A stretch of 64,000 nucleotides of DNA from the NCBI RefSeq assembly GCF_052425735.1, contig NC_135769.1, positions 8,494,001 through 8,558,000 of the forward strand, written 5' to 3'. The position numbers were made by a program, and so were the translations under genes. Below, one piece after another: positions 20,453 to 24,454 of this stretch (within the stretch, counting starts at the first letter, position 1; each line of letters opens with the position of its first letter). Under the pieces are notes generated by a model, which saw only the letters and a list, made by a program, of their open reading frames with translations, searched no databases and had not been told where the DNA came from. The DNA is from Oculina patagonica (Eukaryota).

Positions 20453-21490
20453 ATGAGCACTGGTATAACCGAGGATCAATTGAAAAAGATGGTGCAGGAG
20501 CGTGGGCTCCCATTCGCCGCAACCGAGTTAACAATTGTTCGAGAAGGAGGTCCAAATATTCTTGATCAAGGAAGGATAGCCGAATCTCTTGCAGTCCTTG
20601 AACATGGCGAGAAAATCGAGTCTCTTAATAAGGAGTTAAAAAAGAAAGATGGCGAAATTGTCGCCTTACAGAAATCTTTGAAGGAACTTCGTGAGAAAAA
20701 CGATGAACTTAATAGCGCGCTGAAGTCAAAAGATGTTGAGATCGAAACACTGAGATCGAGAATCGATGAACTAGAAGAGGACAAACGAGAGTTGCAGAGA
20801 AAGTTGGGTTCCGTTGAGACTGATCTTGGACTACTCACAAGGGAAGTCGAGAAGCTGGGAAAAGCAAAATCAACCCAGGACCAAACATATTTAAAACTTA
20901 AACAAGATCTGGAGCGAGTTGTGAGAAATATAGAGGCGGTGAAAGAAGATCTCGAAAAGAAACAAAAGGAGAACGACGATCTGAAGAAGGAACTGAAGGA
21001 CCTCAAAGAATCACAACATAAAGGGCTTCTTCCTCTGATGCTTGGTGCCAAAGGTTTGCCAATAAAGCCTCCTCTACCACAAATACCCCAAACAAGCCTG
21101 GAAGCATTGCTTCATCTGGGCGAAATGTGTCGCCAACTGCAAATCAAGATGTACAAGTCTGTGTTTCCAAACTCATTTGTGGAAAATATAAATTACAAGG
21201 TGGAAACTATTCACCGTCACTTGAATAAGAAGCTTTCAAATACTGAAGAGGCTCAAAAGAAGTGGGTAAAGATCCAAGAGAAGTTTCACTGGAGTGAAAA
21301 TCACGAAGAGGCAATAAATCTTCTTCGGGAAACCAGAAACGCCGAAGCCCATCCCGAAATATCAAAGGAATCCCTTCAACTGGCCATAAGCATAACAGAT
21401 CAGGCTAATAAGTCGAGCGGTGAGGCCGGCTGGTTTACTTCGCAGCTTCTAAACGAGCTGATGCATATGTGGGAAACTGATCTATCGTAA
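20453..21490 (+). CDS. Coiled-coil protein with C-terminal HEPN-like domain (paralogue 1, 345 aa)
   Basis: Uninterrupted ORF: heptad-rich Lys/Glu region, Pro-rich linker (PIKPPLPQIP), then a helical domain with LGEMCRQLQ and RNAEAHP (R-x4-H). Clearly paralogous to 23417-24454. Confidence 0.85.
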   Translation: MSTGITEDQLKKMVQERGLPFAATELTIVREGGPNILDQGRIAESLAVLEHGEKIESLNKELKKKDGEIVALQKSLKELREKNDELNSALKSKDVEIETLRSRIDELEEDKRELQRKLGSVETDLGLLTREVEKLGKAKSTQDQTYLKLKQDLERVVRNIEAVKEDLEKKQKENDDLKKELKDLKESQHKGLLPLMLGAKGLPIKPPLPQIPQTSLEALLHLGEMCRQLQIKMYKSVFPNSFVENINYKVETIHRHLNKKLSNTEEAQKKWVKIQEKFHWSENHEEAINLLRETRNAEAHPEISKESLQLAISITDQANKSSGEAGWFTSQLLNELMHMWETDLS

Positions 21491-23416
21491 CGCTTACTAT
21501 CTTTTCTTAAAATTGCGGCCTTCTGGGATGCGAAAAGATGACGATAAACTTGCAAACTTTATTACTTATTTGTATTTAATAGACTAGTTTAAAGCTTTCT
21601 GCCTAGCCCTCGCTTCACCTACGAAGAGCAAAGAATAGATAGTGGGTCGTGTGGAGTATAGTCAATACCCAAGGATGTATAAAGACGCTTTTCTTCTTTA
21701 AGTCGTAGTAAATGTACGTTTTTTCACTTAATCATCTCGGCAAACTGAAGCTACTAAAATTTCAACGCGAGTCGTTTCACATACGTCGAATTTTCTCGAA
21801 TACACGGTTTCGCTTGGATATCATCACTGGAAGAACTCGTTCGTTTTTCTGTTTTGCTAGGGATTGCAAATTGACGATTACAGACGTATTTACTTTCAAC
21901 CATAAACGATAACATGGGAGGGAGAAGCGAATGATTAGCGCGATCGAAGCATAGGTCTTAGTCAACCATGATAATTCCTGATATGTAGTTACATGTGTTT
22001 AACGGTGGAGTCAAGGCGTCATTTCAAGCTTTGTCCGCTGTGATAAAGAACGTTTTCCTACAACCTAGTGCACCGAAAATAAAATCTGGTCTTGTCTACT
22101 TATACCGGCGATTAATTTGCTTTTGCTTAGTTTAGAGTTAATAAGAAGGTTTAGCAGTTTATTTTGTAGGGCTATCTTTAACGCCTAAATCCTGCGATTT
22201 AACATAAGCAAGGTTCGCCTGGTAAAACACCAAGATGTTTTCATTCCCATCTATTTTCTATTAACAGACGAGCATTTTCAACTTATTAACATCTCCTTTC
22301 AACTTTTGGAGTGTTCTCTTCGAATAATCGGAGGTTCACAAGCGTCTTAGCCTGTTCAATTTGAAAACGTCCTGGGAGTATGACGGGACAGGATAAAAAG
22401 ATGAAGCCATTAATAGACGAATATCTGTGTGCAGTGTAGAAGCATTTGAGAGGACTCTTTTCTTTTAAACAGATTTTTGGATTTTTACTAGGGATATTTC
22501 TTATAAGCATCTCCCTGCACCATTACTAATCGCCAAGCTTTTATTTGATATTTAAAATGAAAATGATGTTTCTCAGTTTAGTTTTCTGAGAAGAAAATCA
22601 GTCACCCATTTCCGAGAAACTTGAATATTTATTTGATAACACCTGTGTGTGGTAACTTTTGGGTTAAAAACATCACGTGGTAGTTACGACTGTGATTGGA
22701 GGACGCAAATATGTGCATAGTATAGAAACGTTTTGTTGAGCGATATGCTTAGTCAGGCGCGCGAAATGATGAGCTGGAGTCATGTTTCTTATAGGTAGTC
22801 CACCATAAGTTCGCGTGAACATTTTATTTCGACGTTTTATTGCAAACTGTAAGGGTATACAGTTTGCAGAAATTCAATATAGCCCGTTAGTTCACTTGTT
22901 GGATGGAATATAAACTATAAAAAACAACACCACGAATATAAACAGAAGGGCACAAATTTCCTAGAAATCGATTCTGTAAACATCCGCTTCTTATTTGCGC
23001 ATGAGTAACTAAGTAAAGCCTCTGGTCACCACTTGTAAGGCAGAATGTCTCCGCGCGAGTAAATTGTGAAAAAAACATATGTTTTTAGTTCATTTGAAAC
23101 AAAAAGAAAATAACATTAAAAATGTTAGGAGGAACATGTAGCATATTTTGGTTTCGCAATGTTCTTTTTTTTAGTTTCAAAATGAAAGCAAACATAAATC
23201 TAAGGATTTTGGCTATTTATATTTTCAATGTAAAGTAATCTGCCACATGGGCTAGCTGTAAGATCAGTGATTGGTTGAAGAAACAGCCGCGTCATATTGT
23301 CGGGAAATACCTGCTTGCCGTCACGCCGATGTTCAGTTTCATCACACAGGGACAGAAACGTAGGTTTTTAGAAGTAGTTTTAGCAAAAATATCCCGGAAA
23401 CTTCCTCGCTACAGCC

Positions 23417-24454
23417 ATGATTACCGACCACGAAGAACAATTAAGGCAGTTCGGTGAAGATCTCTCAGTCGATCCAATGGCAGCGGCAGCTTTATTGGGG
23501 ATGAATGTCACGTTGAGAAGAGAAGTGTATCAAGACCGCGCAAGAATGAACGAAGCAGTAGTTAGTCAGCACACTGAAGACATCGAGTCCCTTAAAAAGC
23601 AGATTGATGATAGGAATAAAGAAATCAGAGAATTAACCAAAACCGTGGAAATACTTGAGGAGCAAAACCAAGAACTAAAAGTGGAACTGAAGTCGAGAAA
23701 CGACGAGATCAAAGCTCTCAAAGCGAGAATCGGTCGACTCGAAAGCGACAAGAAGGATTTAGAAGACGAGCTGAAGTCCGTTAAAGTCAAAGTTTGTCGT
23801 ATGGAGAAGGATATCAGAGAGCTGACCGAAGCAAAGATGGCCCAGGACGAGAAAAACATGGAATTGCAAGAAAATTTCGACAAAGCCACGGGTAAGATGG
23901 AGAGCAGAAACCTAGTCCTGAAGAAAGAAATAAAGGAGATACGTGAGTCACAACACAAAGAGATATCGCCGCCATCTGCCGCCATTCCAAGGGCAGGACG
24001 ACAAATGCTTACTCCTCCGTTACCGCGGCATTTGCAGATAGCCGATCGCGAGTTGCATGCCTCGCTGTCTTTGGGAGAACTCTGCAGCCAACTCCAAAAC
24101 AAGTTGTACAAGGTGATATTTCCAAATTCGTTCATGGCAAGCAGAAACTACAAGATGAAGAACATTCGGCGCGATTTGGAAAAACTTCCTCAACCAAAAG
24201 AAGACAAAGACAGATCAAGGAAAAAGTGGGACGAGATTAGAGAAAAGTTGACTTGGGATGAATACTATGAAGATGCGATGAAGTCACTTCAGGATAGCAG
24301 AAATCTGGATGCTCATCCCAGTCCGTTAACGGAGGAGATGCTCAACAGAGCGGCAGAGATCATGGATTCCAAAGGTAACCTCAAGGGCTATCTGTCTTTG
24401 AAACGTGTCCACGAGTTGATATCTATGTGGAAACAGGTACAAACGATGGAGTAA
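23417..24454 (+). CDS. Coiled-coil protein with C-terminal HEPN-like domain (paralogue 2, 345 aa)
   Basis: Same architecture: coiled coil, PPLPRH linker, LGELCSQLQNKLYKVIFPNSF, RNLDAHP. Confidence 0.85.
   Translation: MITDHEEQLRQFGEDLSVDPMAAAALLGMNVTLRREVYQDRARMNEAVVSQHTEDIESLKKQIDDRNKEIRELTKTVEILEEQNQELKVELKSRNDEIKALKARIGRLESDKKDLEDELKSVKVKVCRMEKDIRELTEAKMAQDEKNMELQENFDKATGKMESRNLVLKKEIKEIRESQHKEISPPSAAIPRAGRQMLTPPLPRHLQIADRELHASLSLGELCSQLQNKLYKVIFPNSFMASRNYKMKNIRRDLEKLPQPKEDKDRSRKKWDEIREKLTWDEYYEDAMKSLQDSRNLDAHPSPLTEEMLNRAAEIMDSKGNLKGYLSLKRVHELISMWKQVQTME

Follow-up and report, generated by a model that had tools for sequence, protein, structure and literature searches.

Two paralogous genes of the stony coral Oculina patagonica and a probable HEPN-like protein family of anthozoans with a putative leucine zipper

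Ribonucleases (RNases) of the HEPN superfamily act through two domains which pair to form one active site, and most of the known HEPN proteins of animals are large multi-domain immune proteins. In cnidarians, HEPN domains are well known within large immune proteins with NACHT, DEATH or TRADD-N domains, which belong to the DZIP3-like and the CXorf38/Swt1-like families. The domain is characterised by an up-down core of four helices, arranged as two hairpins and in many cases interrupted by an insert that separates helix 2 from helix 3, and by an Rx4-6H motif, typically with N, D or H after the arginine, which sits where core helix 3 ends and the loop to helix 4 starts; in many families, but not in all, helix 2 provides a further conserved residue of acidic nature, often in the form Ex3[KR] (PMC3710099). 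Here, we compare with these systems two genes which code for small proteins of 345 amino acids each and which lie on a stretch of 64,000 nucleotides from the stony coral Oculina patagonica (contig NC_135769.1, positions 8,494,001 to 8,558,000, in the following called the window): gene 1 at 20453-21490 (+ strand, protein P0055) and gene 2 at 23417-24454 (+ strand, protein P0001), both coordinates including the stop codon.

This gene pair probably represents a new anthozoan HEPN-like family which is dimerised by a leucine zipper and possibly acts as an RNase; for this reading as a whole, including the mechanism proposed below, the chances are in our estimate even. Each protein would comprise four parts, i.e., a short variable N-terminus, a zipper of about 130 residues, a flexible proline-rich linker and a domain of about 135 residues with six helices, and it is this C-terminal domain that likely represents a diverged DUF4145/Swt1-like HEPN domain, as judged from sequence and predicted fold.

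The gene pair and its family

Both genes are uninterrupted open reading frames (ORFs) on an O. patagonica chromosome. The two proteins can be aligned from end to end with 35% identity (E = 7e-58), the coding sequences are hardly alignable at the DNA level, and no copies of the family beyond these two were found by tblastn of the window. In other corals, the orthologues share 62-81% (gene 1) and 60-88% (gene 2) identity in the C-terminal domain and are single ORFs of 337-343 amino acids, with one being called at 315 amino acids, and the same gene order is kept in two other coral assemblies, inside arrays of three to four family members. As genes 1 and 2 each have orthologues of their own in many other corals, the duplication is old. 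Based on comparisons with three orthologues each, gene 1 has a ratio of non-synonymous to synonymous substitution rates (dN/dS) of 0.19-0.25 and gene 2 one of 0.15-0.18, which holds for coiled coil and C-terminal domain alike; both ORFs are under purifying selection and are, beyond chance, real conserved genes. An earlier sequence-only reading of the window, which had put forward two intronless paralogues of 345 amino acids, was exact in its coordinates, and its uninterrupted coding regions are mirrored by the single ORFs of the orthologues.

Outside the window, O. patagonica has a third copy (P0020, LOC144633288 isoform X2) which is 92% identical to gene 2, from which it differs mostly in the first ~75 residues, and which is truncated within the C-terminal domain. 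Look-ups of the exact sequences of P0001 and P0020 gave no record.

That the ORFs might be chance frames, pseudogenes or exons of larger genes instead of stand-alone genes is highly improbable. This reading can refer to the GenBank model P0002 (window positions 23417-29720), in which gene 2 is spliced five codons before its stop and joined to downstream Cys-rich and SUEL-lectin exons to give a product of 509 amino acids. However, the fused model swaps only the last five residues of gene 2, and since all orthologues stop at the native stop codon the fusion probably reflects an error of gene prediction or else an isoform of minor importance. In addition, many corals have stand-alone orthologues of equal length and with the same C-terminus, and the dN/dS values of 0.15-0.25 speak for real stand-alone genes. 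The flanking signals fit as well: both ATGs have a purine at position -3 and an in-frame stop codon shortly upstream, and a sequence scan located the first AATAAA after the stop codon at 22078-22083 for gene 1 and at 24864-24869 for gene 2 (both + strand), i.e., 410-590 bp 3' of the respective stop codons.

Opposite the coiled-coil regions, the minus strand contains two antisense ORFs (20566-21051 and 23566-24135; 161 and 189 amino acids) with a high content of Ser, Phe and Leu. Probably these are not genes but arise from the Glu/Lys/Leu-biased coiled-coil coding on the sense strand.

With respect to the distribution of the family, the profile of the C-terminal domain was run with HMMER exhaustively through 1.84 billion representative proteins and yielded 155 clusters at E <= 0.001, 85 of them at E <= 1e-10. 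Most members are nameless; the few named ones belong to Oculina, Stylophora (e.g., XP_022797837.1), Actinia, Paramuricea and Dendronephthya, covering Scleractinia, Actiniaria and Octocorallia, and amongst them no name from outside Anthozoa was seen. A further profile search in a set of 5.8 billion proteins retrieved only additional family members, none of them labelled as HEPN. Genes 1 and 2 are ancient paralogues of a family that could be traced to anthozoans only, namely to stony corals, sea anemones and octocorals. The domain has no Pfam family, a small animal protein consisting of a zipper plus a HEPN domain was not found described, and none of the searchable papers mentions the accession numbers of the named orthologues.

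Conservation within the family was counted in 89 diverged representatives covering the full domain. The most conserved columns are three tryptophans and the residues of an R-N-x-x-A-H-P motif, of which R295 is kept in 77, N296 in 68, A299 in 71, H300 in 76 and P301 in 79 representatives. The arginine and the histidine, on whose constancy among homologues the sequence-only reading had made its case depend, are thus well conserved (87% and 85%, respectively) and yet not invariant. In 65 of the 89 representatives, the N-terminal region has 100 residues or more, and within the N-terminal regions of at least 60 residues E, K, Q, R and L together account for 51% (median), so that a coiled coil followed by the domain is the usual layout. 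Some distant relatives (P0139, P0197 and P0211) have two to three full or partial copies of the domain per chain; in the two short ones of these, with 310 and 349 amino acids, the copies fill most of the chain, and in P0139 both copies contain R-x4-H. Such two-copy chains with R-x4-H would fit a domain that works in pairs.

The C-terminal domain and the coiled coil

The proposed succession of a coiled coil, a Pro-rich linker and a helical C-terminal domain is present in both proteins. The C-terminal domain comprises approximately residues 213-345 of gene 1 (21089-21487, + strand) and 210-345 of gene 2 (24044-24451, + strand), and AlphaFold2 modelled it with a predicted local distance difference test score (pLDDT) of 93.1 and a predicted template modelling score (pTM) of 0.87 for gene 1 (alignment of 96 sequences), and with a pLDDT of 90.2 and a pTM of 0.85 for gene 2 (16 sequences). 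Both models have the same layout of six helices within about 135 residues, the helices of gene 1 spanning residues 215-237, 250-258, 264-277, 282-293, 305-322 and 330-341. The sequence LGE(M/L)CxQLQxKxYKxxFPNSF occupies residues 222-244 in gene 1 and 219-241 in gene 2. In gene 1, the motif reads R295-N-A-E-A-H300-P301 (21335-21355, + strand) and lies in the loop directly after helix 282-293; in gene 2, it reads R295-N-L-D-A-H300-P301 (24299-24319, + strand) and lies in the loop after helix 282-292. Both sequence motifs had been quoted correctly beforehand, including the first nucleotides of the R295 codons (21335 and 24299).

The Rx4-6H motif with a polar residue after the arginine is present in both genes as R-N-x-x-A-H. 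Compared at the level of secondary structure only, its position agrees with the HEPN definition as well, as in both models R295 is found two to three residues past the end of the fourth helix and H300 in the loop before the fifth. The six predicted helices would be compatible with a HEPN core plus an insert and an extra C-terminal helix, although the fold searches described below retrieved no solved HEPN structure.

In profile comparisons, the four Pfam families most often matched by the 89 members all belong to the HEPN clan, namely DUF4145 (9 members), HEPN_Swt1 (9), RiboL-PSP (8) and Cthe2314 (4). Apea (3) and AbiU2 (1) of this clan were matched as well, and each of the unrelated families was matched by at most three members. 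All HEPN matches are below threshold. For DUF4145 (PF13643), gene 2 scored 17.3-17.8 bits, with a match spanning profile positions 16-88 of 88, and gene 1 scored 12.5 bits, the gathering threshold of 23.1 not being reached; for HEPN_Swt1 (PF18731), the domain of gene 2 scored 18.4 bits, again short of the gathering threshold (27.5), and the best E-value among 16 members was 7.4e-4. Amongst the PADLOC models, those for CARF-HEPN, Csm6 and Csx1 recurred: five of ten sampled members matched models of the CARF-HEPN type over 52-119 profile positions and always in the C-terminal part of the profile, which, given the architecture of Csm6 and Csx1, we assume to correspond to HEPN. In NCBIfam, which served as comparison library, there was scattered noise and no HEPN theme.

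In turn, a Foldseek search of the BFVD, a library of predicted viral structures, with the gene 2 model retrieved three Faunusvirus proteins (TMq 0.60-0.68, probability 1.00, E = 0.025-0.14) and a Gaeavirus "DUF4145 domain-containing protein" (TMq 0.53, probability 0.91). The three best of these matches are uncharacterised predicted proteins of giant viruses. A scan of viral contigs based on the closer alignment of the family revealed no relatives. When plasmid and phage collections were searched with the domain by tblastn, five and one matches, respectively, were obtained, all at noise level. The two best of the plasmid and phage matches were rejected, as they have no HEPN or other relevant Pfam domain.

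The coiled coil was analysed in a full-length alignment of 17 sequences (gene 1 numbering). A single heptad register with a = 55+7n and d = 58+7n runs unbroken through residues 48-184 of gene 1 (20594-21004, + strand), forming a coil of about 130 residues, and by alignment with gene 1 the coil of gene 2 comprises approximately residues 49-175 (23561-23941, + strand), including a deletion of 10 residues near its C-terminal end. In gene 1, it is followed by the Pro-rich linker (approximately residues 185-212; 21005-21088, + strand), which is marked by variable Pro-rich columns and the non-helical start of the AlphaFold2 model. The a and d positions hold L, I, V, M or F in a fraction of 0.70 of the alignment cells, compared with 0.04-0.37 in the other six phases. 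At the d positions 58, 72, 79, 86, 100 and 107 there is Leu in all 17 sequences, and Ile is invariant or almost so at the a positions 55, 69 and 97; N83, also at an a position, is invariant (17/17), N174 (a) occurs in 13/17, and the a positions of gene 1 also hold K111. According to established coiled-coil rules, Ile at a and Leu at d together with a buried Asn at a favour a parallel dimer, and with respect to register, hydrophobic core residues (beta-branched Ile at a included) and Asn at a, the sequence has the features of a parallel dimeric leucine zipper. We infer that the coil forms a parallel two-stranded zipper, most likely as a homodimer, which would be about 20 nm long, assuming a rise of ~0.15 nm per residue.

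As to the choice of partner, the charge pairs between g and e' positions were counted, which is a crude heuristic: the gene 1 homodimer has three attractive pairs and one repulsive pair, the gene 2 homodimer five attractive pairs and one repulsive pair, and the heterodimer four attractive and nine repulsive pairs. Because of these counts and of the 10 residues missing from gene 2, homodimers look more likely than heterodimers. Of the earlier proposal that the coil drives homo- or heterodimerisation, the dimer has thus gained the hallmarks of a parallel zipper, while its heterodimeric variant is disfavoured by the g-e' count.

Proposed function, rival readings and genomic surroundings

In the mechanism proposed here, the zipper would keep two C-terminal domains close to each other via the flexible linkers, and the paired domains might form a composite, metal-independent endoRNase site across the dimer interface, as in HEPN enzymes. 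Overall, the probabilities that the proteins do or do not cut RNA are about balanced. A role in stress or antiviral responses, as suggested in the sequence-only reading, is speculative. Since a nuclease in the form of a permanent dimer would need further control, expression, localisation, an inhibitor or access to the substrate might each provide it.

A number of observations weigh against an active HEPN RNase. No sign of any such further control was found. The best profile scores are about 18 bits compared with curated HEPN cut-offs of 23-27, the best E-value of a single sequence in Pfam is about 7e-4, and scans of individual members give comparably weak matches to unrelated families. A Foldseek search of the PDB with both models retrieved no solved HEPN structure (best E = 0.77, TM 0.2-0.35), the lists consisting of globins, phycocyanins, ferritins and similar proteins and containing as only possible HEPN entry, at noise level, chain G of 7bxo, presumably a toxin-antitoxin complex of the HEPN type; when the PDB was searched at the level of sequences and profiles with the full protein, with domain profiles of 16 and 89 sequences and with two divergent members, there were likewise only coiled-coil or noise matches. 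The conserved acidic residue of helix 2 is not evident amongst the 89 representatives: D253 is acidic in ~62% of members, and residue 221 is E or Q in 84% and yet sits in helix 1. R or H is absent in ~13-15% of family members. Rapid evolution is typical of many immune effectors, and the selection acting on the two genes is of the ordinary purifying kind. Finally, the genomic context gives no functional support.

Accordingly, the verdict on the HEPN assignment made in the sequence-only reading is mixed. The conservation and position of the motif, the recurrent weak HEPN matches and the match to a fold annotated as DUF4145 speak for it, and the failure to reach any cut-off speaks against it; the structural check recommended at that time, modelling of the C-terminal domain followed by Foldseek, produced two confident models and no solved HEPN structure.

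An alternative, doubtful though to be taken into account, is that the C-terminal domain has no relationship to HEPN and is all-alpha and new, with R-N-x-x-A-H-P as a structural or ligand-binding loop, and that the proteins are coiled-coil scaffolds or adaptors of a cytoskeletal, golgin-like or vesicle-tethering kind. This would agree with the fact that no curated HEPN threshold was reached and that solved structures offer no fold match, as well as with the uncharacterised nature of the three best BFVD matches, with the ordinary selection regime and with the names given by NCBI to relatives of the proteins ("cilia- and flagella-associated protein 58-like", "golgin subfamily A member 6-like"); moreover, short helical domains are prone to draw many weak and meaningless profile matches. 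However, the NCBI names rest on coiled-coil composition, and the Pfam matches do not include CFAP58 or golgin models, the weak ones being to generic coiled-coil families. It is also hard to ascribe to chance that six families of the HEPN clan as well as the presumed HEPN part of CARF-HEPN models recur while NCBIfam reveals no such theme, and both the form of the motif (R, N and a spacing of four residues to H) and its structural position are typical of HEPN domains.

The domain might also be a true HEPN relative without nuclease activity, in which case the proteins would be dimeric sensors or adaptors binding RNA or nucleotides, comparable to Swt1 and some expansions in nematodes, for which inactive HEPN domains have been proposed. 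We regard this as unlikely. All evidence for a HEPN relationship, i.e., the Pfam, PADLOC and BFVD matches, applies to it equally, it would account for the acidic residue not being evident in helix 2, and a cell could more readily put up with a constitutive dimer that leaves RNA uncut. HEPN domains without catalysis, probably serving to bind RNA, have indeed been described, but families without catalysis usually lose the motif (PMC3710099), whereas in the anthozoan family the R, the following N and the H are retained in ~76-87% of the diverged members and in both genes of the window.

The most far-reaching version of the nuclease reading assumes an anthozoan family of permanently dimeric HEPN endoRNases that act as RNA-degrading effectors triggered by stress or viruses, with the two paralogues forming separate homodimers with different targets or regulators and with DUF4145-like proteins of giant viruses as closest structural relatives, which would hint that an exchange between nucleocytoplasmic large DNA viruses and cnidarians took place long ago. 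In this full form it appears rather improbable.

Upstream of gene 2 there is a conserved non-coding element of 118 bp (23263-23380, + strand; 37-154 bp upstream of the ATG), a second copy of which is found at 19785-19901 (+ strand), 552-668 bp upstream of the ATG of gene 1, the two copies being 89% identical. The element is also present upstream of the orthologues of gene 2 in three other corals with 72-81% identity and was not detected upstream of the orthologues of gene 1 in L001 or L002. ATTGG (inverted CCAAT) and GTCACGC occur in all five aligned copies, and CGTCA occurs in four of the five. Upstream of gene 2, the element is likely to be a core promoter or part of the 5' untranslated region (UTR), and the presence of two copies may reflect a shared promoter or 5' UTR or else be the trace of a gene conversion or partial duplication. 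Sites resembling interferon-stimulated response elements or NF-kB sites were dropped, as by eye these near-matches are not conserved between species.

The window as a whole is gene-poor, with a G + C content of ~37%, and the defence-gene cluster in which the sequence-only reading had placed the pair could not be found: its neighbourhood contains a TMEM121-like gene together with an exon for a SUEL lectin and repeats. The TMEM121/CECR6-like gene with a repetitive tail lies upstream of the pair at 12020-14785 (- strand; Pfam E = 2.4e-24); its ORF has ~914-921 amino acids and ends in a C-terminal tail of Ser/Pro/Arg/Gln-rich tandem repeats of ~47 amino acids (~141 bp) at ~12218-13203. The SUEL-lectin exon is located downstream at 28881-29201 (Pfam E = 1.6e-25). 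A Cys-rich ORF at 53978-54370 (- strand) has a weak match to u-PAR/Ly-6 (three-finger) proteins (E = 0.006, below the cut-off) and ends in a CCNSDYCN-type motif. The GenBank models of this stretch contain no further Pfam domains, and the remainder of the window consists mostly of repeats and segmental duplications. In particular, the lectin-bearing segment at 27227-30555 is duplicated at 39377-42915, ~12 kb downstream, with 80-94% identity, and a block of ~2-4 kb from the start of the window (1-4400) recurs twice at its end (57115-64000) with 95-98% identity.

Comparison with known HEPN systems

The closest known counterparts include DUF4145 and the Swt1-like group. DUF4145 (PF13643) is a family of the HEPN clan from bacteria, archaea and double-stranded DNA viruses and shares a motif of the R-N-x-x-A-H type with the coral proteins. 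However, it typically occurs in fusions with restriction or helicase modules or is encoded in restriction-modification operons (PMC3710099), and is not found on a eukaryotic leucine zipper. Unlike DUF4145, the coral domain has extra helices and a conserved helix of its own, LGExCxxxQxxxY.

The Swt1-like/CXorf38 HEPN family (PF18731), which belongs to the Abi2/Swt1 clade (Anantharaman et al. 2013), was weakly matched by 9 of 16 and 9 of 89 members of the anthozoan family, and the match covers the region of the motif at profile positions 61-107 of 115. This clade includes active eukaryotic versions, lineage-specific expansions and cnidarian members (PMC3710099). The members known from cnidarians carry fusions to NACHT or DEATH domains, though, and Swt1 itself consists of PIN and a dyad of HEPN domains (PMC3710099); no member is known to have been described with an N-terminal coiled coil as its sole partner.

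With Csm6/Csx1, the KEN domain found in RNase L/Ire1, Las1 and HepT, the coral proteins would share the concept of two HEPN domains per active site. These dimer-dependent RNases dimerise via CARF domains, via kinase and ankyrin parts or via partner proteins and are switched by ligands. In the coral proteins, by contrast, a constitutive zipper would pair the domains and no sensor domain is visible, and their domain has no detectable fold match to the solved structures of these enzymes. The bacterial coiled-coil nuclease tandems (CoCoNuTs) likewise combine long coiled coils with HEPN nuclease domains (PMC11090510), yet they are large McrBC-associated proteins encoded in operons, and a sequence relationship to the coral proteins was not found in the present analysis.

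Should the homology hold, the pair would define a new family and a new architecture inside a known superfamily, the surprise being limited because HEPN domains are recruited so often. If the domain should turn out not to be HEPN, it would still be a conserved, anthozoan-specific domain with a confidently predicted structure which has no function in the catalogues. An active HEPN RNase, in turn, would mean that corals have a compact and conserved RNA-cutting effector that domain databases leave unlabelled and automatic annotation calls "golgin-like" or "CFAP58-like", and it would be a new candidate for expression studies on coral stress and immunity. It would also be a simple and testable HEPN member from animals, with only two domains, one of which is a built-in dimeriser.

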